NCBI RefSeq assembly: GCF_001194135.2
Contig: NC_068983.1
Coordinates: 49,378,357 to 49,429,812, forward strand
DNA from: Octopus bimaculoides
Lineage: Eukaryota
Length of the DNA stretch: 51,456 nucleotides
Direction of reading: 5' to 3'
The notes under the pieces are model-generated. The model saw only the letters and a list, made by a program, of their open reading frames with translations, ran no database searches and was not told the origin of the DNA. Numbering within the stretch: position 1 is the stretch's first letter; every line of letters begins with the position of its first letter. The translations under genes and the position numbers were made by a program. Below, piece by piece: positions 1,041 through 51,456 of this stretch.

Positions 1041-1987
1041 TATATTTTATATATATATATATNNNNNNNNNNNNNNNNNNNNNNNNNNNNNNNNNNNNNN
1101 NNNNNNNNNNNNNNNNNNNNNNNNNNNNNNNNNNNNNNNNNNNNNNNNNNNNNNNNNNNNNNNNNNNNNNNNNNNNNNNNNNNNNNNNNNNNNNNNNNNN
1201 NNNNNNNNNNNNNNNNNNNNNNNNNNNNNNNNNNNNNNNNNNNNNNNNNNNNNNNNNNNNNNNNNNNNNNNNNNNNNNNNNNNNNNNNNNNNNNNNNNNN
1301 NNNNNNNNNNNNNNNNNNNNNNNNNNNNNNNNNNNNNNNNNNNNNNNNNNNNNNNNNNNNNNNNNNNNNNNNNNNNNNNNNNNNNNNNNNNNNNNNNNNN
1401 NNNNNNNNNNNNNNNNNNNNNNNNNNNNNNNNNNNNNNNNNNNNNNNNNNNNNNNNNNNNNNNNNNNNNNNNNNNNNNNNNNNNNNNNNNNNNNNNNNNN
1501 NNNNNNNNNNNNNNNNNNNNNNNNNNNNNNNNNNNNNNNNNNNNNNNNNNNNNNNNNNNNNNNNNNNNNNNNNNNNNNNNNNNNNNNNNNNNNNNNNNNN
1601 NNNNNNNNNNNNNNNNNNNNNNNNNNNNNNNNNNNNNNNNNNNNNNNNNNNNNNNNNNNNNNNNNNNNNNNNNNNNNNNNNNNNNNNNNNNNNNNNNNNN
1701 NNNNNNNNNNNNNNNNNNNNNNNNNNNNNNNNNNNNNNNNNNNNNNNNNNNNNNNNNNNNNNNNNNNNNNNNNNNNNNNNNNNNNNNNNNNNNNNNNNNN
1801 NNNNNNNNNNNNNNNNNNNNNNNNNNNNNNNNNNNNNNNNNNNNNNNNNNNNNNNNNNNNNNNNNNNNNNNNNNNNNNNNNNNNNNNNNNNNNNNNNNNN
1901 NNNNNNNNNNNNNNNNNNNNNNNNNNNNNNNNNNNNNNNNNNNNNNNNNNNNNNNNNNNNNNNNNNNNNNNNNNNNNNNNNNNNNNN

Positions 1988-2018
<31 letters not shown>

Positions 2019-2215
2019 TATACACACACGCACACACATATGTATATATACACATATATATATACATACATATATATACACACACATGCTACGGACACAT
2101 ATGCATGTAAATTTATATATATATGCATACACACCCATGCACACACACACACACATATATAAACATACGCACATACACATACGTACATACACAACAGACA
2201 GATAGAAACACACAT
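873..2215. repeat. Compound (CA)n/(TA)n microsatellite flanking assembly gap 1063-1988
   Basis: Seen directly. Confidence 0.95.
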
Positions 2216-2356
2216 ATACACATCTATGCCTTTCTATGAGCAGATGTATAATAATGTGTGAATATACATGTCAGCATATGTATGTTTCCATATATTATGA
2301 ACGACAGGGAAAGAGAGAAACGTCAACAAAATAAATAGAACTTGAGATAAAATGGA

Positions 2357-2445
2357 AGAGAGAGAGAGAGGGAGAGAGAGGGAGAGAGAGAGAGAGAGAG
2401 AGAGATAGAGAGAAAGAGAGGAAGGAAGGAAGGAAGGAAGGAAAA
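2357..2445. repeat. (GA)n/(GAAG)n purine tract
   Basis: Seen directly. Confidence 0.9.
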
Positions 2446-3099
2446 CGAAGGAAAAAATTTCACATATATATTAATCTTTCTTGTATTTTCAGTAGTCTGC
2501 CATTTACCATTTTTGTCCTGACTAGTCTTATTCTATCACCAATCAACACATTGTCATCCACCGCCACCAATTTCTACTCCGCCAAAACTGTGTTTATCAG
2601 TTTTATGTTCACCTTTTCTTTCAGCTTTATTTAATTTGAGCAATAGTCAGTTGGTGAATTGACTTTATATGAAGGTGAAGGATTAACAGCTTTTTTCCAT
2701 TTCACCTCGAGCTAGTTTTTCCCAAATTCTTTGGCTACAAACATATATTTCATTTTAGAGTCATCATCATTCTAGTAAAGCTAAATTGTCAAAACCTCCA
2801 AGAGGCTGCTAATTTCCAAATACTGATAACCCTTCAGCTTGCTTTGCAAAGAATGGCAAATTTTAGTAAACAATTTTAGTAAATTGTCGTTGTTATAGTC
2901 GTTATTTTAATTAATAATTTTATTATCTTTATTTTTTCTCTTCTTGGGTTATCCATGTCATATCTTGGCTCCTTCCCTCGGCTTAGAGACGCAGCATTTT
3001 CCTAAAAGCATGTGCTGTTTCAAGTACTGGTACCAACTGAATACTTACTATGGAGTTTCTCATTTCCAAGATTTTATGACAGAATATTGCTTTTAGTTT

Positions 3100-3434
3100 G
3101 AAGGCGCATGGCTCAGTGGTTAGAGCGTCGAGCTTTCGATCGTGAGATTGTGAGTTCGAATCCCGGACCAGGCTACGTGTTGTGTTCTTGAGCAAGACAC
3201 TTTATTTCACGTTGCTCCAGTTCACTCAGCTGTAGAAATGAGTTGCGACGTCACAGGCGCCAAGATGTATCGGCCCCTTTGCCTTTCCCTTGGATAACAC
3301 TGGTGGCGTGGAGAGGGGAGGCCGGTATGCATGGGCGACTGCTGGTCTTCCATAAACAACCTTGCCTGGACTTGTGCCTCGGAGGGTAACTTTCTGGGTG
3401 CAATCCCATGGTCAGTCAAGGCCGAAGAGAGTCT
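3100..3434 (+). mobile_element. tRNA-derived SINE (head type A, tail type X)
   Basis: A box TGGCTCAGTGG (3109-3119), B box GAGTTCGAATCC (3152-3163), then central TTCTTGAGCAAGACACTTTATTTCAC...CAGTTCACTCAGC block. Head shared with copies at 14.9 kb and 33.5 kb. Confidence 0.85.
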
Positions 3435-3635
3435 CACCTTTATTTTCAGTAATGAGGTGCGGTATCAGGCAACATGGTTGGATGACAGGGTAACGCCATT
3501 TGTAGAATAGGTAGGGTGGGAAGAAAAGAAGACAATGGAACATAAAATAAAATAGAATAAAAAATAAAACAGGATAAATACTGTTACCCTCTAGATACCT
3601 ATCTACTTATATACCCACATCTATTCTCTTTTTAC

Positions 3636-3830
3636 TGTTTTACTTGCTTCAGTCATTTGACTGCGGCCATGCTGGAGCACCGCCTTAGTCTAGCAAATCG
3701 ACCCCAGGGTTATTCTTTGTAAGCCTAGTACTTATTCTATCGGGCTCTTTTGCCGAACTGCTAGATAACGGGGATGTAAACATACCACCATCGGTCATCA
3801 AGCGATGTTGGAGGGACAAACACACACACA

Positions 3831-3876
<46 letters not shown>

Positions 3877-3911
3877 NNNNNNNNNNNNNNNNNNNNNNNN
3901 NNNNNNNNNNN

Positions 3912-3949
<38 letters not shown>

Positions 3950-4116
3950 GACGGGCTTCTTTCACTTTCCGTCTACCAAATCCACTCACAAGGCTTTGGT
4001 CGGCTCGAAGCTATAGTAGAAGACACTTGCCCAAGGTGCCACGCATTGGGAATGGACCCGGAACCATGTGGTTGGTAAGCAAGCTACTTACCACACAGCC
4101 ACTCCTGTGCCTATAT
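3636..4116 (-). mobile_element. tRNA/CORE-like SINE with internal (TA)n(TG)n microsatellite (family B)
   Basis: Minus strand reads GGAGTGGCTGTGTGGTAAG...GGCACCTTGGGCAAGTGTCTTCTACTATAGC (CORE-like), internal microsatellite and gap, 3' end GTGCTCCAGCATGGCCGCAGTCAAATGACTGAA. About 10 homologous copies in the window. Relation to published octopus OR-type SINEs is inference. Confidence 0.85.
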
Positions 4117-4201
4117 CCACAAATAATTTAAACAAGCTTAAATGTTTAAACTTTTATATCCGAGAAGCTTTAAAGCTTTAATATCCATTATGAACATTAT
4201 T

Positions 4202-4733
4202 TACTTCGTTTTGGGATTTGGTTTGCAAGATTCTTTATGTGAGTTCGTGTGTTGAAGCATATTTTGTTGTGTCTGGAGAGAGTCATTCTCTTTTATTGCC
4301 TTATAATTTAACACACTCACCGATGAAATTTCCACTCTTTCCCTTCTTTATTTTTCTGAAGTTTTCGTTGCGTCTTGCAACCTTTTCAATAGTTTTGACT
4401 CTGTCCGTTAATCACACTGTGTACCTTTATGTTTGTTTGTGCGCATGTGTATGGGTTAGTGTGTGTATGTGCATATGCATACATACATGCATACATACAT
4501 ACATGCATATGCACACACACGCACATACATACACACACTAAACCCCACGCATGCGCACGAACAAACAAAAAGGAACGCAGTGTGAATAACGGACAGAGTC
4601 AAAACTATTGAAAAGGTTGCAAGACGCAACGAAAATTTTAGAAGAATAAAGAAGGAAAATGTGGAAATTTTATCGGTGAATGTGTTAAATTATAAGGCAC
4701 TAAAAGAGAATGACTCTCCCCAGATACAACAGT
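4202..4733 (+). mobile_element. Asymmetric foldback element: ~60-bp unique end plus long inverted repeat 4265-4731 with central (CATA)n
   Basis: Arms TGTTGTGTCTGGAGAGAGTCATTCTC... and ...GAGAATGACTCTCCCCAGATACAACA. Homologues at 39565-39792 and 35726-35780. Confidence 0.75.
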
Positions 4734-4875
4734 ACATTATTTGCATTTGACGGGTATATGCCCTCATCTTGTTTGTTGCTAACATAACGTTTCGGCTGAT
4801 ACACCCTCCAGCATCCATCCGGTGTCTTGGGGAAATTTCGAACCTGGATTCTCATTCCTAAGGTATTTTTCGAGG

Positions 4876-4928
<53 letters not shown>

Positions 4929-4940
4929 CATTATCATTAC
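4733..4940 (-). mobile_element. Hammerhead-bearing element, 3' part with degenerate core and (AAT)n linker
   Basis: Minus strand GACAC-CGGATGG-ATGCTG-loop-CAGCC-GAAACGTT. Homologous to 10.7, 30.3, 38.8 and 41.5 kb loci. Confidence 0.8.
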
Positions 4941-4942
4941 TA

Positions 4943-5115
4943 TTAAGACGGTGAGCTAGCTAAATCGTTAGCCCGATGGATAAGAACGTTTGGCGGCATT
5001 ACGTCCGGCTTTACAGTCTAAATTTAAATTCCGCCGTCGTGGTCTCCTTTGCCTCACGTCCTTTCGCGGTCGCTAAAATATGTAGCAGTGGAGCGCTGAG
5101 GTCGATGCAATTCAC
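4943..5115 (+). mobile_element. Degenerate tRNA/Nin-domain SINE (family D)
   Basis: GACGGTGAGCTAGCTAAATCGTTAGC head and TTTGCCTCACGTCCTTTCGCGGTCGCTAAAAT, aligning by eye to the 21107 copy. Confidence 0.65.
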
Positions 5116-5153
5116 TACATCAAATTTTAAGCAGTGGGCCTTAAGTAGAAAGG

Positions 5154-5155
<2 letters not shown>

Positions 5156-5188
<33 letters not shown>

Positions 5189-5195
5189 TTTCATC

Positions 5196-5227
<32 letters not shown>

Positions 5228-5254
5228 CATTTTCATCATCATCAACATCATCGT

Positions 5255-5287
<33 letters not shown>

Positions 5288-5325
5288 CGTCATCATCACG
5301 ATTATCATTACTGCCACAAGTATTA
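5156..5325. repeat. (CAT)n/(CGT)n trinucleotide microsatellite
   Basis: Seen directly. Source of the poly-His and poly-Asp ORFs. Confidence 0.95.
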
Positions 5326-5752
5326 TTATTAATCATGTTAATAATGTTAATATGTTAATAAATTAATTTAGCAACGAAAACTTGGGAGATTTATAGAATT
5401 TTTCTGAGTTTGAGGCAATTGATTTATGTTAAATGTCTCAAAGGCTCTTGTTTAATTATTTNNNNNNNNNNNNNNNNNNNNNNNNNNNNNNNNNNNNNNN
5501 NNNNNNNNNNNNNNNNNNNNNNNNNNNNNNNNNNNNNNNNNNNNNNNNNNNNNNNNNNNNNNNNNNNNNNNNNNNNNNNNNNNNNNNNNNNNNNNNNNNN
5601 NNNNNNNNNNNNNNNNNNNNNNNNNNNNNNNNNNNNNNNNNNNNNNNNNNNNNNNNNNNNNNNNNNNNNNNNNNNNNNNNNNNNNNNNNNNNNNNNNNNN
5701 NNNNNNNNNNNNNNNNNNNNNNNNNNNNNNNNNNNNNNNNNNNNNNNNNNNN

Positions 5753-5788
<36 letters not shown>

Positions 5789-5828
5789 ACGATACTTACA
5801 CACGGGTCTTATATGGGTGCATGTGTGT

Positions 5829-6207
5829 GTTGGCACTCCATCGCTTACGACGTCGAGGGTTCCAGTTGATCCGATCAACGGAATAGCCTGCTCGTGAAGT
5901 TGACGTGCAAGTGGCTGAGCACTCCACAGAGACGTGTACCATTAACGTAGTTCTCGAGGATATTCAGTGTGACACAGTGTGACAAGGCTGACCCTTTGAA
6001 ATACAAGTACAACAGAAACAGGAAGTAAGAGTGAGAGAAAGTTGTGGTGAAAGAGCACAGCAGAGTTCGCTACCATCCCCTGTCGGAGCCTCGTGGAGCT
6101 TTTAGGTGTTTTCACTAAATAAACTCTCACAACGCCCGGTCTGGGAATAGAAACCCCAATCCTATGACCGCGAGTCCGCTGCCCTAACCACTGGGCCATT
6201 ACGCCTC
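5829..6207 (-). mobile_element. tRNA-derived SINE (head type B, tail type Y)
   Basis: Close reverse-complement paralogue of 18828-19215. A box TGGCCCAGTGG; tail GATCGGATCAACTGGAACCCTCGACGTCGTAAGCGA. Confidence 0.9.
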
Positions 6208-8742: not shown

Positions 8743-10279
8743 TGTATATATNNNNNNNNNNNNNNNNNNNNNNNNNNNNNNNNNNNNNNNNNNNNNNNNN
8801 NNNNNNNNNNNNNNNNNNNNNNNNNNNNNNNNNNNNNNNNNNNNNNNNNNNNNNNNNNNNNNNNNNNNNNNNNNNNNNNNNNNNNNNNNNNNNNNNNNNN
8901 NNNNNNNNNNNNNNNNNNNNNNNNNNNNNNNNNNNNNNNNNNNNNNNNNNNNNNNNNNNNNNNNNNNNNNNNNNNNNNNNNNNNNNNNNNNNNNNNNNNN
9001 NNNNNNNNNNNNNNNNNNNNNNNNNNNNNNNNNNNNNNNNNNNNNNNNNNNNNNNNNNNNNNNNNNNNNNNNNNNNNNNNNNNNNNNNNNNNNNNNNNNN
9101 NNNNNNNNNNNNNNNNNNNNNNNNNNNNNNNNNNNNNNNNNNNNNNNNNNNNNNNNNNNNNNNNNNNNNNNNNNNNNNNNNNNNNNNNNNNNNNNNNNNN
9201 NNNNNNNNNNNNNNNNNNNNNNNNNNNNNNNNNNNNNNNNNNNNNNNNNNNNNNNNNNNNNNNNNNNNNNNNNNNNNNNNNNNNNNNNNNNNNNNNNNNN
9301 NNNNNNNNNNNNNNNNNNNNNNNNNNNNNNNNNNNNNNNNNNNNNNNNNNNNNNNNNNNNNNNNNNNNNNNNNNNNNNNNNNNNNNNNNNNNNNNNNNNN
9401 NNNNNNNNNNNNNNNNNNNNNNNNNNNNNNNNNNNNNNNNNNNNNNNNNNNNNNNNNNNNNNNNNNNNNNNNNNNNNNNNNNNNNNNNNNNNNNNNNNNN
9501 NNNNNNNNNNNNNNNNNNNNNNNNNNNNNNNNNNNNNNNNNNNNNNNNNNNNNNNNNNNNNNNNNNNNNNNNNNNNNNNNNNNNNNNNNNNNTATATATA
9601 TATCTGCGTGAGTGTACCCATGCATATCTATATGTTCAGGTATGTATATACATACATACAAGCATGCATACATACATACATACATACATACATACATACA
9701 TACATACACACACATACACACACAAACACACACACACACACACACACACGCACATATATATGATGCAAATGCGAATAGGTGAATAGCAATATTATCCTCG
9801 AAAACTAGCTATGAAATATTGGCGACTACTTTTCTACATTTCGACGGAAAATTGATTCTGCTTTGCCGATGTTTGAAGTGTTTATAAGGAGAAAAAAAAT
9901 GATGCTTTGCAAAGATTATTGATTATGTCCATAGGGGTGATTGCTTTATACTTACCTGACATTGAATATTGAATATTTACACAGTTGGTCCCACACGTAT
10001 AACGCCAAAAATGTACATGATGAGACAGTTCCATAACAGACACAAGAAACCATTATGCATCGCAGAATTTGAATATGTAAAAAAAAAAAAGCATTATTCA
10101 GTCACCTTAGCAACTGTAATGTCACACTGTTGAATAACGTAGAATAATGTACTACTTGAATATATCATATTATATTCAAAATTTTTATTCTAGCATATGA
10201 AGTACATTTGCACAATCATATCTCCGTTTCTCACATTTTACCCACCGTTACACGCGGGCATACAGACATACTCATATGC

Positions 10280-10327
<48 letters not shown>

Positions 10328-10364
10328 GCAGGTAAGTAGGTAGGTAGGTAGGTATGTAGGTAGG

Positions 10365-10422
<58 letters not shown>
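10280..10422. repeat. (GATA)n/(GGTA)n microsatellite
   Basis: Seen directly. Confidence 0.95.
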
Positions 10423-10429
10423 TACCTCC

Positions 10430-10658
10430 CGGTTTATGTATGTGTATGCATATGTTTGTGTGTCTGTCTTTGTCCCCCAACATTGCTTGACAACCGATGC
10501 TGGATGTGTTTACGTCCCCGTAACCTAGCGATTCGGCAAAAGAGACTGATAGAATAAATACTAGGCTTACAAAGAATAAGTCCTGGGGTTGATATCTTCG
10601 ACTAAAGGTGGTGCTCCAGCATGGCCGCAGTCAAATGACTGAAACAAGTGAAAGAGTA
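10430..10658 (+). mobile_element. Family B SINE, 3' half
   Basis: Matches the 3' half of 48225-48600 and 43372-43775. Confidence 0.85.
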
Positions 10659-10659
10659 T

Positions 10660-10885
10660 TATTTACTTTATTTACATTTGACGGATATTTGTTCTCATCT
10701 TGTTTGTTGTTAACACAACATTTCGGCTGATATACCCTCGAGCCTTCATCAGGAATGAAAACCCAGGTTCAAAATTTCTCCAAGACACCTGATGAAGGCT
10801 GGAGGGTATATCAGCCGAAATGTTGTGTTAACAACAAACAAGATGAGGACAAATATCCGTCAAATGTAAATAATGTAAATAATAA
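10660..10885. mobile_element. Hammerhead-bearing element as inverted pair: minus arm 10660-10753, plus arm 10751-10885
   Basis: About 90 bp of near-perfect inverted repeat. Junction has AGG microhomology at 10751-10753. Confidence 0.85.
10784..10829 (+). ncRNA. Minimal type I hammerhead ribozyme motif (predicted)
   Basis: Stem I GACAC(10784-88)/GTGTT(10825-29); core CTGATGA(10789-95) plus extra A; stem II GGCTG/CAGCC; GAAA(10817-20); short stem III (TGT here, CGT in other copies); H17=U. Activity untested. Confidence 0.65.
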
Positions 10886-11060
10886 ACAAAAATCAGTTTT
10901 CTCCTCTCCCTATCAATTAATTTTCTCAAGAGTCGTTAACTATTTCCGATCAGTTTTTGTTTCTTTCTTCAAAATCAAGGAGAGACTTCCCTTGCCACAT
11001 TTAATACCATATGAAATTCACTTGATTTTGTTTTTCTAAAAGAAAAAGATTCCTCAAAAT

Positions 11061-25072: not shown

Positions 25073-25261
25073 ATAACTTGGCAAAAGAACTAATAGAATA
25101 CAATTATTTCTCCGTTCCTCTGAACAGTAAACTATTAGAATACAATTACCATTTACACTTACACATTTATTTGATTAATTGATCTTCCATCATAATTAGA
25201 TCTTATTCCTCTGTGAGTACATATATTCCAATTAGATTTGATTACATTTTATTTTTTAAAG

Positions 25262-25998: not shown

Positions 25999-26202
25999 GA
26001 GGCAGGTGACATCACATCAGGTATTGAGCGGCTAAAGTATGATAGAAAAACAGTATCAGCTGTCTTGCTGTTGAGGACCAAGATACCTATTCCTGTTGGT
26101 GCTTGGGAACAGATATCTTGGTCCTCGACAGCGAGACAGCTGATACTGTTTTTTTTTATCATACTTAAGCATCTCAACACCTGATATAAAGTCATTTGCC
26201 TC
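25999..26202. mobile_element. ~200-bp palindromic MITE-like foldback
   Basis: Arms ...ACAGTATCAGCTGTCTTGCTGTTGAGGACCAAGATA... and ...TATCTTGGTCCTCGACAGCGAGACAGCTGATACTGT..., loop of about 10 nt. Confidence 0.7.
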
Positions 26203-28981: not shown

Positions 28982-29014
<33 letters not shown>

Positions 29015-30235
29015 NNNNNNNNNNNNNNNNNNNNNNNNNNNNNNNNNNNNNNNNNNNNNNNNNNNNNNNNNNNNNNNNNNNNNNNNNNNNNNNNNNNNNN
29101 NNNNNNNNNNNNNNNNNNNNNNNNNNNNNNNNNNNNNNNNNNNNNNNNNNNNNNNNNNNNNNNNNNNNNNNNNNNNNNNNNNNNNNNNNNNNNNNNNNNN
29201 NNNNNNNNNNNNNNNNNNNNNNNNNNNNNNNNNNNNNNNNNNNNNNNNNNNNNNNNNNNNNNNNNNNNNNNNNNNNNNNNNNNNNNNNNNNNNNNNNNNN
29301 NNNNNNNNNNNNNNNNNNNNNNNNNNNNNNNNNNNNNNNNNNNNNNNNNNNNNNNNNNNNNNNNNNNNNNNNNNNNNNNNNNNNNNNNNNNNNNNNNNNN
29401 NNNNNNNNNNNNNNNNNNNNNNNNNNNNNNNNNNNNNNNNNNNNNNNNNNNNNNNNNNNNNNNNNNNNNNNNNNNNNNNNNNNNNNNNNNNNNNNNNNNN
29501 NNNNNNNNNNNNNNNNNNNNNNNNNNNNNNNNNNNNNNNNNNNNNNNNNNNNNNNNNNNNNNNNNNNNNNNNNNNNNNNNNNNNNNNNNNNNNNNNNNNN
29601 NNNNNNNNNNNNNNNNNNNNNNNNNNNNNNNNNNNNNNNNNNNNNNNNNNNNNNNNNNNNNNNNNNNNNNNNNNNNNNNNNNAAATTTAAATAATAAGGG
29701 TGAAACATTGAATATTAATTTGATTAATATCAATTTAAAACCAGTGGCCTTAGCATATTGAAAAATCTGAAGATTCAGAAAAATTATATTACATACATAT
29801 AAGATATCTTTTCATTTGTCTTGCTATCTAAGGTATCTTTTCATTTGTCTGACTCGCTTACGTCCTGGCGTTTACTGAATTTTCTTGAGAACAATTTTTT
29901 CTTAGTGGTAAGACCATAAGGGATTTACTTCTAGCATAATGGATGTCCACTTAGTGGTCATCCCTCTTATATGTATGTATATATATATTCCATGAGTTAA
30001 AAAAAAGCAGTTCTCTCACTAGTGCACCTATGTTAAAATTTCCATAAAATATTTTGAATTTTCAATCTTGTCTAGCTTTTTTAACTCAATTTTTTGTTGT
30101 TGCTAAGAAAATAATATACATACATACATACATACATACATACACACATACATACACACATACATACACACATACATACACACATACATACATACATACA
30201 TACATACATATCGTTCTATATTTTAGAGGTAAGGA

Positions 30236-30745
30236 ATTCTGTACGTTATTTGCATTGGACGGATATGGGTTCTCATCTTGTTTGTTGATACCACAGCATT
30301 TCGGCTGATTTACTCTCCAGCCGTCATCAGGTGTCCTGGTAGAATTTTGAACCCAACACTGGGTTCTCATTCCTAAGGTATATTTTGCTGATGTTATTAT
30401 TATTATTTATTCAAGGCACTGCATGGAATTGAAATCGGAATCTTGAGGTTAGTTGCTCGTGCCCGTAGCATAGTGGTTAAAAGCGCGAGCTACTAGCCCC
30501 AAGATACCGAGTTCAATTCCTGGCAGTGCTTTGAATATATAATAACAACAACAACAACAACAATAATAATAATAATAATAACATCAGCAAAAAAAATACC
30601 TTAGGAATGAGAACCCAGCGTCGGGTTCAAAATTCTACCAGGACACCTGGTGAAGGCTGTAGAATAAATCAGCTGAAACGTTGTGGTAATAACAAATAAG
30701 ATGAGGACACATATCCTTCTAATGTATATAATGTAAATAATATAA
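30236..30745 (+). mobile_element. Full tRNA-head / (AAT)n / hammerhead element (30461-30745, +) preceded by an inverted 5'-truncated copy (30236-30458)
   Basis: A box TAGCATAGTGG (30466-76), B box GAGTTCAATTCC (30509-20), (AAC/AAT)n linker, core CTGGTGA-A-GGCTG..CAGCT-GAAACGTT (30647-30682). Minus arm retains CTGATGA (30324-30330) and stem II. Confidence 0.85.
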
Positions 30746-30764
30746 ATACGTGCATACATATATG

Positions 30765-31035
30765 TATGACGCTATAGTAAAAGTATTGCTTTCCAGCCAA
30801 ATGACTCTGGGTTCGATCTCACTGCGTGGTAAGTTAAGCAAGTGTGTTATTCTACAGCCCCTGGATAAACGAGAATCACTGTTATGCAAGCGGTGTCCTT
30901 TATTTCCGTGTCTGATATGGAAACAAGCAAGGGAGATGGCTGTGTCCGGTCATAGAAAATCTGCGTCAACAAATTCAGTTTGACACGAGAGCACGAGTAA
31001 GTGGATGTTAGAACCATGATGATGATAATTATGAT
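30765..31035 (+). mobile_element. Degenerate SINE with tRNA/CORE-like head and RTE-like (GAT)n tail
   Basis: GGGTTCGATCTC B box, TAAGCAAGTGTGTTATTCTACAGC CORE-like block, 3' GTGGATGTTAGAACCATGATGATGAT similar to the RTE tail. Confidence 0.55.
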
Positions 31036-33502: not shown

Positions 33503-33820
33503 GAGAGCACGTAGCTTAGTGGTTAGGGTGTTTGGCTCGCGATCTTAAAGTCGTGAGTTCGATTCCTGCCGACGTGTTTTGTCCTTGATCAAGACACTTT
33601 ATTTCGCCTTGCTTCACAGTCCACTCACCAAGTAAGCACCTGTAATTCAAAGGGTCAGTCTGGTCACTTTCTGTGTCACGCTGAATCTCCTTTAGAACTA
33701 CGTTAATGATACACGTGTCTGTGGAGTGGTCAGTCAGTTGCACATTAATTTCGCGAGCGGGCTGTTCCGTTGATCGGATCAACTAGAACACTCGATTTCG
33801 TCGTAACAGACGGAGTGTTA
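33503..33820 (+). mobile_element. tRNA-derived SINE (head type A, tail type Y)
   Basis: A box TAGCTTAGTGG, B box GAGTTCGATTCC. Paralogue of 14617-14931. Confidence 0.85.
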
Positions 33821-34314: not shown

Positions 34315-34575
34315 AAAAAGTACTTGTGCTGGTGTCACAAAAAGAAAAGCACTGGTGATGGTGCCGCGTAAAAGCCACTCAATACACTCTGTAAAGTAGT
34401 TGGCGTTAGGAAGAGTATCCAGCTCTAGAAATCAAGCGAAAACACACTATGGAACTTGGTGCGGCCTCTGCCGTTGCCAGTTCCGTTCAAACCATCCAAT
34501 CCATGCCAGCATGGAAGACGGACGTTAAGTATTGATAATGATCATGATGACGACGACGACGACGATAATAACGAT
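34315..34575 (+). mobile_element. Degenerate RTE 3' UTR fragment
   Basis: GTTGGCGTTAGGAAGAGTATCCAGCT...GCATGGAAGACGGACGTTAA with (GAT/GAC)n tail. Confidence 0.7.
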
Positions 34576-36867: not shown

Positions 36868-37590
36868 AAGTGAGACCATAATCCAAGGCCTCTGCCTGGA
36901 GTGTAGCCAGCCCACTTATGTGTACCTTTCCTTCATTGGACACGAAACTCTGCTTGCGAAGACCTGTTGAGGCAAGTGAAATCGAAATCGAACTAAATTG
37001 GACGACTGGCACCCATGCCAACATTTCCTTCATTGGACACTAAACTCAGCTTGCAAAGACCTATTGGGGCAAGTGAAAGTGAAATCGTGATGGCACCTGT
37101 ACCAGTGGAGCGCTAAGAGCACCGTNNNNNNNNNNCGTGATGGCACCTGTACCAGTGGAGCGCTAAGAGCACCGTCCGAGCGTGATCGTTGCCAGAGCAG
37201 CTGTCTGACTTCCGTGCCAGTGGCACGTAAATAGCTCCATTTGAGCGTAATTGTTCCTAGCACTTGTGCCGGTGACACAGGAAAAGACATTCGAGCGAGG
37301 TTGTTGCCAGTGACGCCGGACTGGCTCCTGTGCAGGTGGCACATAAAATACACCATTTTTGAGTGTGACCGTTGCCAGTACCGCCTGATTGGTCTTCGTA
37401 CCGGTGTCATGTAAAAGTACCCACTACATTCTCGGATTGGTTGGCATTAAGAAGGGCATCCAACTGTAGAAACTCTGCCAAATCAGATTAGAGCCTGGTG
37501 TAGCCATCTGATTCGCCAGTCCTCAGTCAAATCGTCCAACCCATGCTAGCATGGAATGCGGACGTTAAACGATGAGGATGATGATGATGA
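36868..37590 (+). mobile_element. RTE LINE 3' UTR with internal tandem units and (GAT)n tail
   Basis: Close paralogue of 49927-50485. Contains a 10-N gap with duplicated flanks. Confidence 0.8.
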
Positions 37591-37739: not shown

Positions 37740-38302
37740 ACTTGCTGTGTGGTTATGGACTTTGCAGTCAGTGCAGTTTTGCAGCCATGTGGGTTTGGGT
37801 TCAGTTCCACTGTGCAGCATCTCGAGCAGGTGTTTTCTACTGTAAGCCTGGTGCTTTGAGAGTTAATTTAATACCTAGAAGCTGTTGGGTAGCCTCCACT
37901 GTGTGTGTGAACGTGTATGTATATGTGCATGTGTGTGTATCTTTGTGTTTGTGTGTATATATATATACGTGCATCATTGTGCTTGCTTCTCGCCACTTAA
38001 GTATTGAAGTTGGTTTGTTTACTTCTCCATATGTTAGCAGCTCAACAAAAAGAAACTGACAAAATAATTAGTACTTTTACTTGTTTCAGTCATTTGACTG
38101 CGGCCATGCTGGAGCACCGCCTTTAGTCGAGCAAATCGACCCCAGGACTTTATTTTTTGTAAGCCTAGTACTTATTTTATCAGTCTCTATTGCTGAACCG
38201 CTAAGTTACAGGGGACATAAACACACCAGCATCGGTTGTCAAGCGATTTTGTGGGGACAAACACAGACACACAAACATATACACACAAACATATACACAC
38301 AA

Positions 38303-38339
<37 letters not shown>

Positions 38340-38420: not shown

Positions 38421-38795
38421 AAAGAATAAAAGCATGTTTACAATGAACTACATGTTGATCATCCTAATCTCTGATCAACAAATCAGCATCTTATTTCTGG
38501 ATTTGTGATGGATTTCCGTGATGCTTCAACGAATGTGGATTCAGCAAAAGACAGTTGCTCAGTAAAGACTGTGGAAATTGGCCTTCACCCAATGGCTGCC
38601 TGGGAACACAGTCAAAGCAGTACCCTCTACCTGTTCCCGTCAGCTTTTTTCTTTATTCCCACTGAACTTATGAAGAAAATGTGATGGTATTGCTGCTGGT
38701 ATCTTGGTTTGCTGAACAACCTGCACAATAAATATTACAGTGGGCATGGTTGGTGCAAATCCTGCCCCACTCTCTTCTCGTCCTTCAAACTTGTA

Positions 38796-38914
38796 TTACA
38801 TTATTTACATTTGGCGGATATTTGTCCTCATCTTGTTTGTTAGCACAACGTTCGTCAAATGTAAATAATGTAAATAACGTACATAATTCCTAATCTCTTA
38901 AATATAGAACTGTA
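38796..38914. mobile_element. Minimal inverted remnant of the hammerhead element
   Basis: Minus arm 38796-38852 ending at AACGTT, plus arm 38853-38914 carrying the 3' tail. Confidence 0.75.
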
Positions 38915-39097
38915 TAAACTTGTATTAGTCTTGTATTGGTCTGGTACACCAATAGCTATGAGCCCAATATATAGAACTAAAATGGATTTAAACAAGGACA
39001 TTTCATTTCTAAATTATGGATAATAACAGTCTTATTGCAGATGAATTAATGGTCTTGTGAATAAGAGCATTGCTAGCAGAAATATTACCATGTTGCA

Positions 39098-40560: not shown

Positions 40561-40830
40561 TATCATCATCATCATCATAATTTAACGTCCGCTTTCCATG
40601 CTAGCATGCGTGGGACGATTTGACTGGGAACTGGCGAACCAGATGGCTACACCAGGCTCCAATCTGATCTGGCAGAGTTTCGACACCTGGATGGCCTTCC
40701 TAATGCCAACCACTCTGAGAGTGTAGTGGGTGTTTTTTACGTGCCACCAGTATGAAGGCCAGTCCGGCGGTACTGGCAACGGCCACGCTCAAATGGTGCT
40801 TTTTACATGCCACTTGCACAGGAGTCAGTC
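40561..40830 (-). mobile_element. RTE 3' UTR fragment
   Basis: Reverse complement of the 50345-50485 tail. Confidence 0.85.
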
Positions 40831-41278: not shown

Positions 41279-41448
41279 CAGTGGATTATCAAACTTTGTA
41301 GAGCAGCATAGAAAATGCCATGTGATATTTAAATAGGATACTTTACATTCTGAGTTCAACTCTAGCCAAAGCTTACTTTGCCTTTCACCCTTTCAGGAAT
41401 TAATAAAATAAGCTGTCAGTCAAATACTAGTTTGATTTAATTGATCAT

Positions 41449-42084
41449 GTTATTTACATTATTTATATTTGACGGATATTTGTCCTCATCTTGTCTGTTG
41501 TTAACACAATGTTTCAGCTGATATACCCTCCAGACTTTTTCAGGTGTCTTTGGGAAATTTCGAACCTGGGTTCTCATTCCTAGGGTATTTTTCGACGTGG
41601 CACGTGAGAAACAACATTTGAGCGTGGTCGTTGCCAGTGCCACCGGATTGGCTCCTGTGTCGGTGGCTGCCAGAACCGCCTGACTGGCCCTCATGCCAGT
41701 GGCATGTAAAAAGCACTCATTACACTCTTGGAGTGGTCGGTGTTAGGAAGGGCATCCATCTGTACAAACCTTGCCAGACTAGACTGAGCCTGGTACGGCC
41801 TCTGGCTCACCAGTCCTCACTCAAACTGTCCAACCTATGCCAGCATGGAAAGCGAACATTAAAAGATGATTATGATTATTATTATTATTATTATTATCAT
41901 TCAGGTCACTGCCTGGAATCGAACTCGGAATCTTGGGGTTAGTGCTCTTAACCACTATGCCGTGGGCTGGAGAGTATATCAGCCGAAACGTGTTAACGAC
42001 AAACAAGATGAGGACAAATCTTTGTCAAATGTAAATAACGTAAATAATGTACATAATTCCTCATCTCTTAAATATAGAACTGTA
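41449..42084 (-). mobile_element. tRNA-head/hammerhead element (minus, 41449-41963) with nested RTE insert and inverted 3' arm plus tail (+, 41964-42084)
   Basis: Head on minus strand GGCATAGTGGTTAAGAG...GAGTTCGATTCC (41905-41963); core degenerate (CTGAAAA); plus arm GGCTG..CAGCCGAAACGT...GTACATAATTCCTCATCTCTTAAATATAGAACTGTA. Confidence 0.85.
41597..41875 (+). mobile_element. RTE 3' UTR fragment nested in the hammerhead element
   Basis: Homologous to 37300-37590. Confidence 0.8.
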
Positions 42085-42160
42085 TTACTTAACTGATCAT
42101 ATTTTCTGCTAAAATTTGCAACCTTCTGCCAATGTTGGAAATCAATGGAGTCTGTGCTAG

Positions 42161-42829: not shown

Positions 42830-43165
42830 ATCATCATCATCATCATTATCGTTTAACATCCGCTTTCAATGCTAGCATGGGTGGGACGATTTGACTTAGG
42901 ACTGGTGAACCAGGTGGCTACACCAGGCTCCAATCTGATTTGGCAGAGTTTCTACAGCTGGATGCCCTTCCTAACGCCAACCACTCCGAGAGTGTAGTGG
43001 GTGCCTTTACGTGCCACCGGCACGAAGGCCAGTCAGGCGGGTACTGGCAATGGCCACGCTCAAAATGGTGTATTTTATGTGCCACCTGCACAGGAGCCAG
43101 TCCAGCAGCACTGGCAACGATCTCGCTTGAATGTCTTTACATGTGCCAGGAAGGCGACGCTGGGC
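42830..43165 (-). mobile_element. RTE 3' UTR fragment
   Basis: (CAT)n tail then reverse complement of the family consensus. Confidence 0.85.
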
Positions 43166-43371: not shown

Positions 43372-43775
43372 ACTCTTTTACTTGTTTCAGACATTTTGAC
43401 TGTAGCCATGCTGGAGCACCACCTTTAGTTAATCTAATCAAACCCAGGACTTATTCTTTGTAAGCCTAGTACTTATTCTATCGGTCTGTTTTGCCGAACC
43501 GCTATGTTATAGGGACGTAAACACACCAGCATCGGTTGTCAAGCGATGGTAGGAGGACAAACACAGACACACAAACACAAACACGCATGCATACATATAT
43601 ACAAATATACGATGGGCTTCTTTCAGTTTCCATCTACCAAATCCACTCACAAGGCTTTGGTCGGCCTGAGGCTATAGTAGAAGACACTTGCCAAAGGTGT
43701 CACGCAGTGGGACTGAACCCGGAACCATGTGGTTGGTAAGCAAACTACTTACCACACAGCCACTCCTGCGCCTAT
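43372..43775 (-). mobile_element. Family B SINE, near full length
   Basis: Minus strand ATAGGCGCAGGAGTGGCTGTGTGG...GGGTTCAGTCCC...CCTTTGGCAAGTGTCTTCTACTATAGC. Confidence 0.9.
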
Positions 43776-44946: not shown

Positions 44947-45425
44947 GTCATCATCATCAAAATCATTTAACGTCCACTTTCCATGCTAGCATGGGTTGGA
45001 CGATTTGATTGAGGACTGGCGAACCAGATGGCTGCACCAGGCTCCAATCTGATCTGGCAGAGTTTCTGCAGCTGGATGCCCTTCCTAACGCCAACCACTC
45101 CGAGAGTGTAATGGGTGATTTTACATGCCACTGGCACGAGGGCCAGTCTAGCGATACTGGCAGCAGCCATGCTCAAATGGTGTTTTTATGTGCCACCTAC
45201 ACAGGAGTCAGTCCAGTGACACTGGCAAAGACCTCGCTTGAATGTTTTGTTCACATGCCACCAGCATGTTACTAGCATCGCCAGTAAGGTGACGCTGCTA
45301 ACAATCACGCTCAAATGGTGCTTTTTTACGTGCCACCGGCACGGAAGCCAGACCGTTGCTCTGGCAGTAATCCCGCTCGGATGGTGCTGTTAGCGCTCCA
45401 CTGGCACAGGTGCCAGTCATCGAAT
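44947..45425 (-). mobile_element. RTE 3' UTR fragment with tandem units
   Basis: Homologous to 37140-37590. Confidence 0.85.
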
Positions 45426-48224: not shown

Positions 48225-48601
48225 CATAAGAGTGGCTGTGTGGTAGGTAACTTGCTTACTAACCACATGGTTCAATCCCATTGCATGGCACCTTGGGTAA
48301 GTGTCTTCTACTATAGCCTCAGGCTGACCAAAGCTTTGTGAGTGGATTTGGTAGACGGAAACAGAAAGAAGCCTGTCACACACATATGTGTGTGTGTGTG
48401 TGCTTCTCCCCCAATCAACGCTTGACAAGTGATGCTTGTGTGTTTACATCCTTGTAACTTAGTGGTTTGGCAAAAGAGACTGATAGAATAAGTAATAGGT
48501 TTACAAATAATAAGTCCTGGGGTCGATTTGCTCAACTAAAGGTGTGGCTCCAGCATGGACACAATCAAATAACTGAAACAAATAAAAGAAAAAGAATAAA
48601 A
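48220..48601 (+). mobile_element. Family B SINE, near full length
   Basis: Paralogue of 43372-43775. Confidence 0.85.
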
Positions 48602-49926: not shown

Positions 49927-50485
49927 GAGGCAATGGCTTGTGACCGACATCTTTGGGCCTCACCGAGGCAATGACTTGTGACCGAGACCTTTGGAAATAT
50001 GCTGTGCGTGAGAAGACCCGGCAAACCAAGTGAGACCAAAATCCAAGGCCTCTGCCAGGGATGTAGCCAGCCCAGTTATGCGTACCATTCTTTCATTGGA
50101 CACTAAACTCCGCTTGCGAAGACCTGTTGAGGCAAGTGAAATCAAAATCGAACTAAATTTGACGACTGGCACCCATGCCAACGTCTCTTTATTGAACACT
50201 AAACTCGGCTTGCGAAGACCCGTTGGGGCAAGTGAAAGCGAAATCATGCTGGCACCTGTACCAGTGGAGCACTGAGAGCACCGTCCGAGCGTGATCGTTG
50301 CCAAAGCAGCTGTCTAGCTTCCATGCTATCTTACATTCTCGGAGTGGTTGTCGTCAGGAAAGGCATCCAGCTGTAGAAACTCTGCCAAATCAGATTGGAG
50401 CCTGGTGTAGCCATCTGGTTCACCAGTCCTCAGTCAAATCGTCCAACCCATGCTAGCATGGAAAGCGGACGTTAAACGATGATGT
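49927..50485 (+). mobile_element. 5'-truncated RTE-clade LINE: ORF2 C-terminus plus 3' UTR
   Basis: 49953-50033 translates LGLTEAMTCDRDLWKYAVREKTRQTK*, the DR..W...V C-terminal motif of RTE ORF2; tail GCATGGAAAGCGGACGTTAAACGATGATG. Confidence 0.8.
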
Positions 50486-51084: not shown

Positions 51085-51456
51085 TTATTCGGATGCTGAC
51101 CTAAGTCTGCTTTTGATTCTGGCTGTTTTTCCTTCCCGTTTAAAGGAAGGTGGCGGAACAATATTCACGATAGACTCGGCTGATAAGTGGGCTAGTCCCA
51201 CACGCGACAACAGCCGTTCGACGAAGGTCCACAGCTCTGAAATATCTGGACACTGCACGAGTGCGTGCAGAACGGTTTCGTCGCTCTCACCGCATCTCGG
51301 GCAGGTCGGTCCGGTGGTTTTCGAACCGTGTCTGTAGATCTTCTCTCGAACTGGTAGTGCGTCTCGATAGCATTGCCAAGCCAGGGATCTCTGGAAATTA
51401 TCCATTGGCCCCGGCCCGAACGTCGTCTTGAAAAGGCGGGTTAAGAATTTCTCGTC
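51085..51456 (-). mobile_element. L1/Tx1-type LINE ORF2 C-terminal zf-RVT fragment, open to the window edge
   Basis: DEKFLTRLFKTTFGPGPMDNFQRSLAWQCYRDALPVREK...CPRCGESDETVLHALVQCP (C-x2-C-x8-H-x4-C). GC-rich; homology appears to end near 51120. Confidence 0.85.

Follow-up and report, generated by a model that had tools for sequence, protein, structure and literature searches.

A tRNA-headed repeat of Octopus bimaculoides with a Penelope-type hammerhead motif and Penelope-type insertion architecture

What kind of element places a tRNA-like promoter head in front of a hammerhead motif, and which enzyme moved it? The question is raised by a unit at positions 30208-30752 of a 51,456-nucleotide (nt) stretch of Octopus bimaculoides DNA (contig NC_068983.1, positions 49,378,357 to 49,429,812), the whole of which is referred to here as the window. 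An earlier, sequence-only reading had taken the unit for a tRNA-headed short interspersed element (SINE) carrying a hammerhead ribozyme, and had proposed that a non-autonomous RNA polymerase III (Pol III) retroposon captured the pseudo-long terminal repeat (pseudo-LTR) of a Penelope-like element (PLE) and is mobilised by the reverse transcriptase (RT)/GIY-YIG protein of such an element. Our analysis leads us to think it probable that the unit belongs to an old, high-copy, non-autonomous family of Pol III SINEs whose mobilising RT/GIY-YIG enzyme came from a PLE. The DNA itself shows the architecture; the partnership with a PLE, both the capture of the pseudo-LTR and the mobilisation, we infer by analogy.

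By blastn and repeat finding, the unit resolves into one repeat of about 290 nt present twice, with the copies head-to-head. The element is short, non-coding and dispersed, measuring about 330 nt with its tail. The repeat had been recognised correctly at 30236-30745, but its limits had been drawn too narrowly, a 37-nt tail and a 9-base-pair (bp) flanking repeat having been overlooked. Its parts are these.

30461-30752, plus strand: full-length copy, with head 30461-30536, (AAC)n(AAT)n linker about 30537-30582 and 3′ module about 30583-30752
30208-30462, minus strand: inverted, 5′-truncated copy, with partial head, (AAT)n, module and 37-nt tail
30642-30687, plus strand: hammerhead relic of the plus copy; CUGGUGA, that is, A6 to G, and a helix I mismatch
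30290-30335, minus strand: hammerhead relic of the minus copy; CUGAUGA kept, GAAAUGCU, that is, U16.1 to C

In the plus copy the head is 76 nt long and the module about 150 nt, and the linker between them is where the sequence-only reading had placed it; no TTTT occurs on the sense strand. The minus copy begins at head position ~23, the first 22 nt being absent, and has its B box at 30425-30435 and its tail at 30208-30244. The arms are complementary over 151 nt at 85% and over 78 nt at 82%, and the two copies overlap by 2 nt where they meet.

The Pol III boxes reported for the head are indeed present. The A box, TAGCATAGTGG at 30466-30476 (+), is an exact match to the consensus and the B box, AGTTCAATTCC at 30510-30520 (+), is near-consensus; the combined A/B-box regular expression matches three times in the window, against 0.037 expected. 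A second head, reported at 41905-41963, was found at 41899-41967 on the minus strand, with an A box (CGGCATAGTGG) at 41952-41962 and a B box (AGTTCGATTCC) at 41915-41925. The head is degenerate, and tRNA-like in its boxes and length only. Other SINE families in the window also have tRNA-like heads with A and B boxes, at 3109-3162 and 33512-33565, the latter scoring 23.3 bits against the Rfam tRNA model, under its gathering score.

In the window, a blastn search together with an nhmmer profile search located the 3′ module nine times, spread over five loci (E 1e-49 to 6e-07), confirming the recurrence reported at 4.7, 10.7, 38.8 and 41.5-42.1 kb. The copies outside the unit are as follows.

4732-4926, minus strand: solitary copy with a long (AAT)n and the 3′ module, hammerhead relic at 4781-4826, without head and without inverted partner
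10751-10884, plus strand: 5′-truncated copy, from module position ~143, with the intact minimal hammerhead at 10784-10829
10657-10753, minus strand: inverted 5′-truncated partner of 10751-10884; arms 97 nt, 97% complementary
38796-38852, minus strand: short 5′-truncated copy forming the left arm at 38.8 kb (blastn, nhmmer)
38855-38915, plus strand: the shorter, inverted arm at 38.8 kb, ending in the 37-nt tail (38879-38915)
41449-41967, minus strand: second full-length copy, with head 41899-41967, (AAT)n and module; hammerhead relic at 41503-41548
41965-42085, plus strand: inverted 5′-truncated arm that starts inside helix II and ends in the 37-nt tail (42049-42085)

The element reported at 41.5-42.1 kb is thus present, but it consists of a full-length minus copy and a truncated inverted copy. 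The linker of the former is broken by an unrelated 275-nt repeat at 41596-41870, which we read as a later nested insertion. The window carries 4453 N in gaps, nearly all of them bordered by microsatellites (e.g., 1060-2000, 5460-5800, 8760-9600 and 29010-29690); it is a short-read draft with gaps, in which copies of some repeats may have been merged or lost.

Whether head and module belong to one element is the first point to settle. It could be argued that there is no SINE here, the module being either a non-autonomous PLE derivative of small size or simply the 5′-truncated 3′ end of a PLE, one that prefers microsatellites and has landed repeatedly in (AAT)n tails belonging to an unrelated small tRNA-derived SINE. 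PLEs show a bias toward insertion in microsatellites (PMC8557442), an (AAT/AAC)n stretch always lies between head and module, most copies are headless, and at 4732-4926 (AAT)n and module occur with no head. The minus arm 30208-30462 speaks against such repeated landings: it runs unbroken from module through linker into head positions 23-76, so that all three parts must have travelled in one RNA. Moreover, the same head is joined to the module in the same orientation in each of the three copies long enough to reach beyond the linker, which upholds the linkage of head and hammerhead claimed at the outset, and a 76-nt head with (AAT)n would make an unusually small free-standing SINE. We consider independent landings unlikely.

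The hammerhead is described here first for the family as a whole. The majority consensus, GACAC-CUGAUGA-A-GGCUGG-AGGGUAUA-UCAGCC-GAAA-CG-U-U^-GUGUU, has a complete core (C3 U4 G5 A6 N7 G8 A9, G12 A13 A14 A15.1, U16.1 H17), a helix II of 5-6 bp with G10.1-C11.1 and a helix I of 5 bp (GACAC/GUGUU). A single unpaired A stands between A9 and 10.1, CG occupies 15.2/16.2, and helix III is absent; through A15.1-C-G-U16.1, a palindrome (ACGU), pairing with a second molecule would be possible. On these features we class it as a minimal type I hammerhead, complete and of the PLE kind, the minimal hammerheads of metazoan PLEs having the same list of traits and having been argued to work as dimers (Cervera & de la Pena 2014, PMC4209133). 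The full descriptor of a minimal hammerhead matched once in the window and never in 300 simulated windows. A chance motif was among the readings rejected. The core segment of the consensus folds with helices I and II.

Intact ribozymes are scarce among the copies. Only one of the seven that span the motif is intact, at 10784-10829 (+), with U.G at 15.2/16.2 and predicted cleavage after the U at 10824; the other six are broken by point mutations. The plus arm of the unit does carry the kind of motif first described, reading GACAC-CTGGTGA-A-GGCTG-loop-CAGCT-GAAACGTT-GTGGT at 30642-30687, so the motif reported there stands, but an intact ribozyme does not, both copies inside 30236-30745 being mutated in the ways listed above.

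How the copies were inserted is told by their architecture. At four of the five loci an abutting inverted pair is found, with a gap or overlap of 0-4 nt at the junction, and none of 13 copies of two other repeat families in the window has an abutting inverted partner. The inner breakpoints, in query positions, are 23/1, 186/143, 217/258 and 8/195; different at every locus, they indicate random 5′ truncation, unlike a transposon with fixed terminal inverted repeats. The arms are unequal in length as well (255 vs. 292, 97 vs. 134, 57 vs. 61 and 519 vs. 121 nt). The conserved 37-nt tail, GTACATAATTCCTCATCTCTTAAATATAGAACTGTAT, occurs three times (30208-30244, 38879-38915 and 42049-42085), always and only at the outer end of the shorter arm; the 10.7-kb pair has no such tail. 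Direct repeats, which we interpret as target site duplications (TSDs), enclose three of the units.

38787-38798 and 38916-38927: TSD AAACTTGTATTA, 12 bp, enclosing the whole 38.8-kb pair
41437-41448 and 42089-42100: TSD TTAATTGATCAT vs. TTAACTGATCAT, 12 bp with one mismatch, enclosing the 41.4-42.1-kb unit
30203-30211 and 30753-30761: putative TSD CATACATAT, 9 bp, in an (ACAT)n microsatellite context

A flanking direct repeat of at least 9 bp has a chance expectation of about 0.001. Since the repeats enclose whole pairs, each inverted pair with its tail represents a single insertion event. At the left end of the 10.7-kb pair, a copy of a separate abundant repeat (…CAGTCATTTGACTGCGGCCATGCTGGAGCACC…) adjoins, which may explain why no TSD is visible there. 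Truncation, an inverted partner, a one-sided tail and TSDs round the pair make up a PLE-type signature: insertions of PLEs exhibit 5′ truncation, an abutting inverted 5′-truncated copy, a tail of 30-40 bp at one end, and TSDs (Craig et al. 2021, PMC8557442).

The same architecture allows three other explanations to be weighed. The family might be an ordinary tRNA SINE dependent on a long interspersed element (LINE), its hammerhead resemblance accidental and its pairs the product of insertion into earlier copies or of local rearrangement. Octopus SINEs are generally taken as LINE-driven (PMC8967140, PMC13282606), the window itself contains LINE fragments, at 24656-25084 and 51085-51405, and covariation of the hammerhead was not seen. 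Set against these points, the simulations mentioned above yielded no descriptor match and the consensus fits five independent PLE-specific traits; TSDs surround whole pairs, junctions close to within 0-4 nt at four loci and the tail is one-sided; and abutting pairs are absent from the two other repeat families. In addition, neither LINE 3′ end in the window carries the module (blastn, nhmmer). A LINE-dependent origin seems to us quite improbable. The LINE fragments themselves are open reading frame (ORF) fragments with a C-terminal zinc knuckle of LINE type (CxxC...H...C), both on the minus strand; the single database relative of the window LINE ORF, at 60% identity, lies on a non-octopus ENA contig beside RVT_1/zf-RVT ORFs, and no SINE copy accompanies it.

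A metazoan retrozyme of the Sm-alpha type, in which tandem hammerhead repeats self-cleave and circularise and the circular RNA transposes, is more improbable still. In its favor, Schistosoma Sm-alpha likewise combines a hammerhead with a Pol III-type promoter within a single short repeat (PMC6765202), and animal retrozymes have been proposed as PLE dependents (10.64898/2026.07.22.740005). All pairs in the window are inverted, however, with no direct tandem among them, and the hammerhead is minimal, without the helix III and loop contacts of canonical type I; it was on the lack of tandem copies and of helix III that we rejected a retrozyme. The insertions also end at a fixed distance 3′ of the cleavage site, 59 nt, or 96 nt with the tail, rather than on it.

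Finally, the arms might be the long terminal inverted repeats of a foldback element or of a DNA transposon of the miniature inverted-repeat transposable element (MITE) type. The hairpins are near-perfect, 10657-10884 folding at -157.7 kcal/mol with z = -30, and TSD-like repeats flank the units. Inner junctions nevertheless vary from locus to locus, the arms are unequal, the tail stands at one outer end, and one copy is solitary and one-armed. With neither constant terminal inverted repeats nor a constant inner junction, the foldback or MITE explanation was rejected, and we give it almost no credence.

We sought a genuine PLE for comparison, with a PLE RT/GIY-YIG pseudo-consensus as query. The search yielded 6951 real PLE proteins, which carry RVT_1, PF28514 (DUF8422) and PF26215 (HTH_animal), some of them with PF01541 (GIY-YIG). 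One locus from a eukaryotic ENA assembly (L003, protein P0038) served as a control. At 1895-6035 it has two PLE ORFs (RT/GIY-YIG) head-to-head, in arms of 2056 nt that are 100% identical across a 29-nt spacer, a perfect inverted pair that points to a very recent insertion. Its hammerhead, CUGAAGA-A-GACCG-GAGUAACA-CGGUC-GAAA-CG-U-C, is found 54 nt past the stop codon, with the 3′ end about 50 nt away, and has in common with the octopus motif the bulged A, a 5-bp helix II closed by G-C, GAAACGU, and the absence of helix III; the helices of the two differ by paired changes. Past the motif, the octopus module has no similarity to the L003 3′ end and cannot be aligned with it. As a separate observation, positions 6020-6035 of L003 end in …GTATATCCGACA and the octopus module has, near its 3′ end, …AATATCCGTCA (within …AAATATCCGTCAAATG…), identical at 9 of 11 positions; the match could be chance or a common terminal recognition motif.

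Several results weigh against a PLE-mobilised Pol III SINE and should be considered together. On the side of the partner, no octopus protein was among the best 120 of the 6951 PLE proteins, tblastn with the pseudo-consensus detected no PLE ORF in the window, and no autonomous PLE with the same 3′ module lies within it. Composite make-up, Pol III-type head, hammerhead of the PLE kind and PLE insertion signature were all found as the sequence-only reading had proposed, but direct tandem (pseudo-LTR) copies of the module do not occur in the window. Arm-to-arm identity is clearly above between-locus identity solely in the 10.7-kb pair. As for the head, only three copies show it; the Rfam tRNA model had no match on 30200-30780 at E up to 10, and ARAGORN, at default and relaxed settings, did not call it as a tRNA. 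The stems of the hammerhead are conserved in the consensus, but over six copies, a small and closely related set, helices I and II were paired in 88.7% of cells with 0 compensatory changes, and shuffles equalled the observed value. The intact copy with its flanks has a minimum free energy fold that is not of ribozyme shape. The comparison with Rfam hammerhead models that had been proposed at the outset gave no match in the window or in a 581-nt region, at the gathering threshold or at E up to 10; this would be expected if those models require helix III, and it is a negative result all the same. The matches that Rfam did return were limited to spurious microRNA hairpins, owing to the inverted repeat and the microsatellites. 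A 17-amino-acid GIY-YIG-like segment, CIYEMPCIACHWSYIGQ at 12058-12108 (-) with E 0.78, was set aside as probably chance, since it has microsatellite-derived sequence on its flanks and runs into a stop at once.

We nevertheless favor a Pol III SINE moved by the enzyme of a PLE and suggest the following course of events. The master RNA is probably made by Pol III from the internal A and B boxes, to judge by these motifs, and would run from the head through an (AAY)n linker into a module of about 150 nt that imitates the 3′ end of a PLE, hammerhead included. By analogy with PLEs, an RT/GIY-YIG enzyme supplied in trans would recognise the 3′ module and copy the RNA into a nicked target. The inverted arm and the tail would then arise during target-primed reverse transcription of the PLE type. 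Lacking helix III, the hammerhead could cut solely as a dimer, through the ACGU palindrome.

What the hammerhead does for the SINE is a further question. Most likely it came with the 3′ end of a PLE as an inherited piece, is inactive as a monomer and is not needed by each SINE copy. Individual copies are unlikely to need it because six of seven are dead, and because cutting would detach the promoter head from the 3′ end at which priming takes place.

Each insertion amounts to a ready-made hairpin, and read-through transcription would give long double-stranded RNA (dsRNA). Unusually abundant dsRNA-forming loci and hyper-editing have been reported in Octopus bimaculoides (PMC5625713). We speculate that a sizeable share of the octopus-specific SINE expansion was driven by PLE RTs and not by LINEs, and that the inverted duplicates so produced are a main source of the abundant long dsRNA and of adenosine-to-inosine hyper-editing in this species; on this view the minimal hammerhead could still act in trans as a dimer, limiting or processing SINE RNA. 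This broad claim is rather unlikely, and the link from hairpin insertions to dsRNA is offered as a hypothesis only.

SINEs are defined through their dependence on LINEs. If a PLE does mobilise the octopus family, the SINE concept would extend to a third retrotransposon class, and PLEs would gain a classical parasite besides the tandem retrozymes. The identity of the mobilising enzyme also bears on how octopus genomes expanded, SINEs being the largest or second-largest class of octopus repeats and mostly unclassified (PMC13282606, PMC8967140).

The family feeds gene annotation as well. In module plus tail, one frame of about 55 codons is open throughout in the consensus and in most copies (e.g., 10755-10900 and 30208-30370); this is probably chance, a rough estimate over six frames being ~0.1. 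Translations of the module match only two proteins, both of them O. bimaculoides gene models. One, A0A0L8FV75, a 51-amino-acid "uncharacterized protein," consists entirely of module and tail, so that the 37-nt tail is also found within a gene model; in the other, dystrobrevin-beta isoform X1, whose gene spans 132 kb, a predicted N-terminal exon derives from the module. This suggests exonisation or annotation artefacts. The two matches also assign the family to O. bimaculoides or a close relative, in keeping with the cephalopod host supposed at the outset. Pattern scans of JGI metagenomes and IMG/VR had no match.

Other repeats of the window may be recorded here. Seven copies of the family of about 275 nt that interrupts the 41-kb linker (TTTCCATGCTAGCATGGGTTGGAC...) lie in the window, with an (ATC)n stretch before each in that orientation, and the separate repeat that adjoins the 10.7-kb pair has six, with a microsatellite tail. 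Two compact hairpins are unrelated to the octopus SINE and are possibly MITEs; the first draws spurious plant-microRNA matches from Rfam.

41596-41870, 34368-34528, 37190-37575, 40574-40818, 42845-43134, 44962-45336 and 50331-50483: copies of the 275-nt family
10300-10656, 3635-3852, 38074-38336, 43373-43597, 48383-48589 and 23658-23736: copies of the CAGTCATTTGACTGCGGCCATGCTGGAGCACC repeat
19555-19700: compact hairpin, a palindrome of about 146 nt
26046-26153: compact hairpin with 48-nt arms, 92% complementary, 12 nt apart

Among known systems, the closest relatives of the octopus motif are the minimal hammerheads of PLEs (PMC4209133), which are likewise type I without helix III or loop 3 and share ACGU, the unpaired nucleotide after A9, G10.1-C11.1, a longish helix II and a 5-bp helix I; they are also widely scattered as solo and opposite-strand copies, and the octopus layout is nearly equal to that of the control L003. 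They differ in standing behind an RT/GIY-YIG ORF, where the octopus motif follows a tRNA-like Pol III head and a microsatellite linker. PLE insertions (Evgen'ev & Arkhipova 2005), as described by Craig et al. (2021, PMC8557442), agree with ours in truncation, inverted abutting copy, tail of 30-40 bp at one end, and TSDs, whereas the octopus unit has no ORF and no partial tandem and measures 60-520 nt per arm, not kilobases.

The Sm-alpha and Sj-alpha SINE-like repeats of Schistosoma (Ferbeyre 1998; Laha 2000; summarised in PMC6765202) are, like the octopus element, short and furnished with Pol III boxes and a hammerhead. Their hammerhead is canonical, an efficient type I form with helix III, and is often arranged in tandem so that cleavage frees monomers; the octopus element has the minimal form, predicted to act only as a dimer, and is dispersed in inverted pairs. 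Animal non-LTR retrozymes (Cervera & de la Pena 2020, PMC7229834; Li et al. 2026 preprint) are also non-autonomous, hammerhead-bearing and thought to depend on PLEs. Unlike the octopus family, they are tandem, with canonical hammerheads, abundant circular RNAs and no tRNA-like head.

tRNA-derived SINEs of octopus were reportedly treated by Ohshima and Okada in 1994. The tRNA SINEs of octopus that are listed as "unclassified SINE" (PMC13282606) resemble the present family in their A/B-box head, short length, high copy number and host. In O. vulgaris, SINEs make up 11.6%, almost all of them "unclassified," and octopus surveys list SINEs and Penelope elements separately (PMC13282606, PMC8967140). 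By description, classical SINEs have a 3′ tail in common with a LINE and are single direct insertions, whereas the octopus family has a tail and an insertion pattern of the PLE type. In the literature searched we found no publication that describes a PLE-dependent SINE with a tRNA head, hammerheads in the repeats of octopus, or the sequence of this element; repeat libraries may catalogue the family without that interpretation. The nearest published ideas are the schistosome Sm-alpha repeat and animal retrozymes as dependents of PLEs. The octopus family is best described as a SINE crossed with a non-autonomous PLE. This Penelope-like reading is well supported by architecture. The composite structure, the boxes, the ribozyme core of the consensus, the insertion architecture and the TSDs can all be seen in the DNA; to them we would add Pol III transcription, to judge by the motifs, and recognition by a PLE enzyme, by analogy with PLEs.

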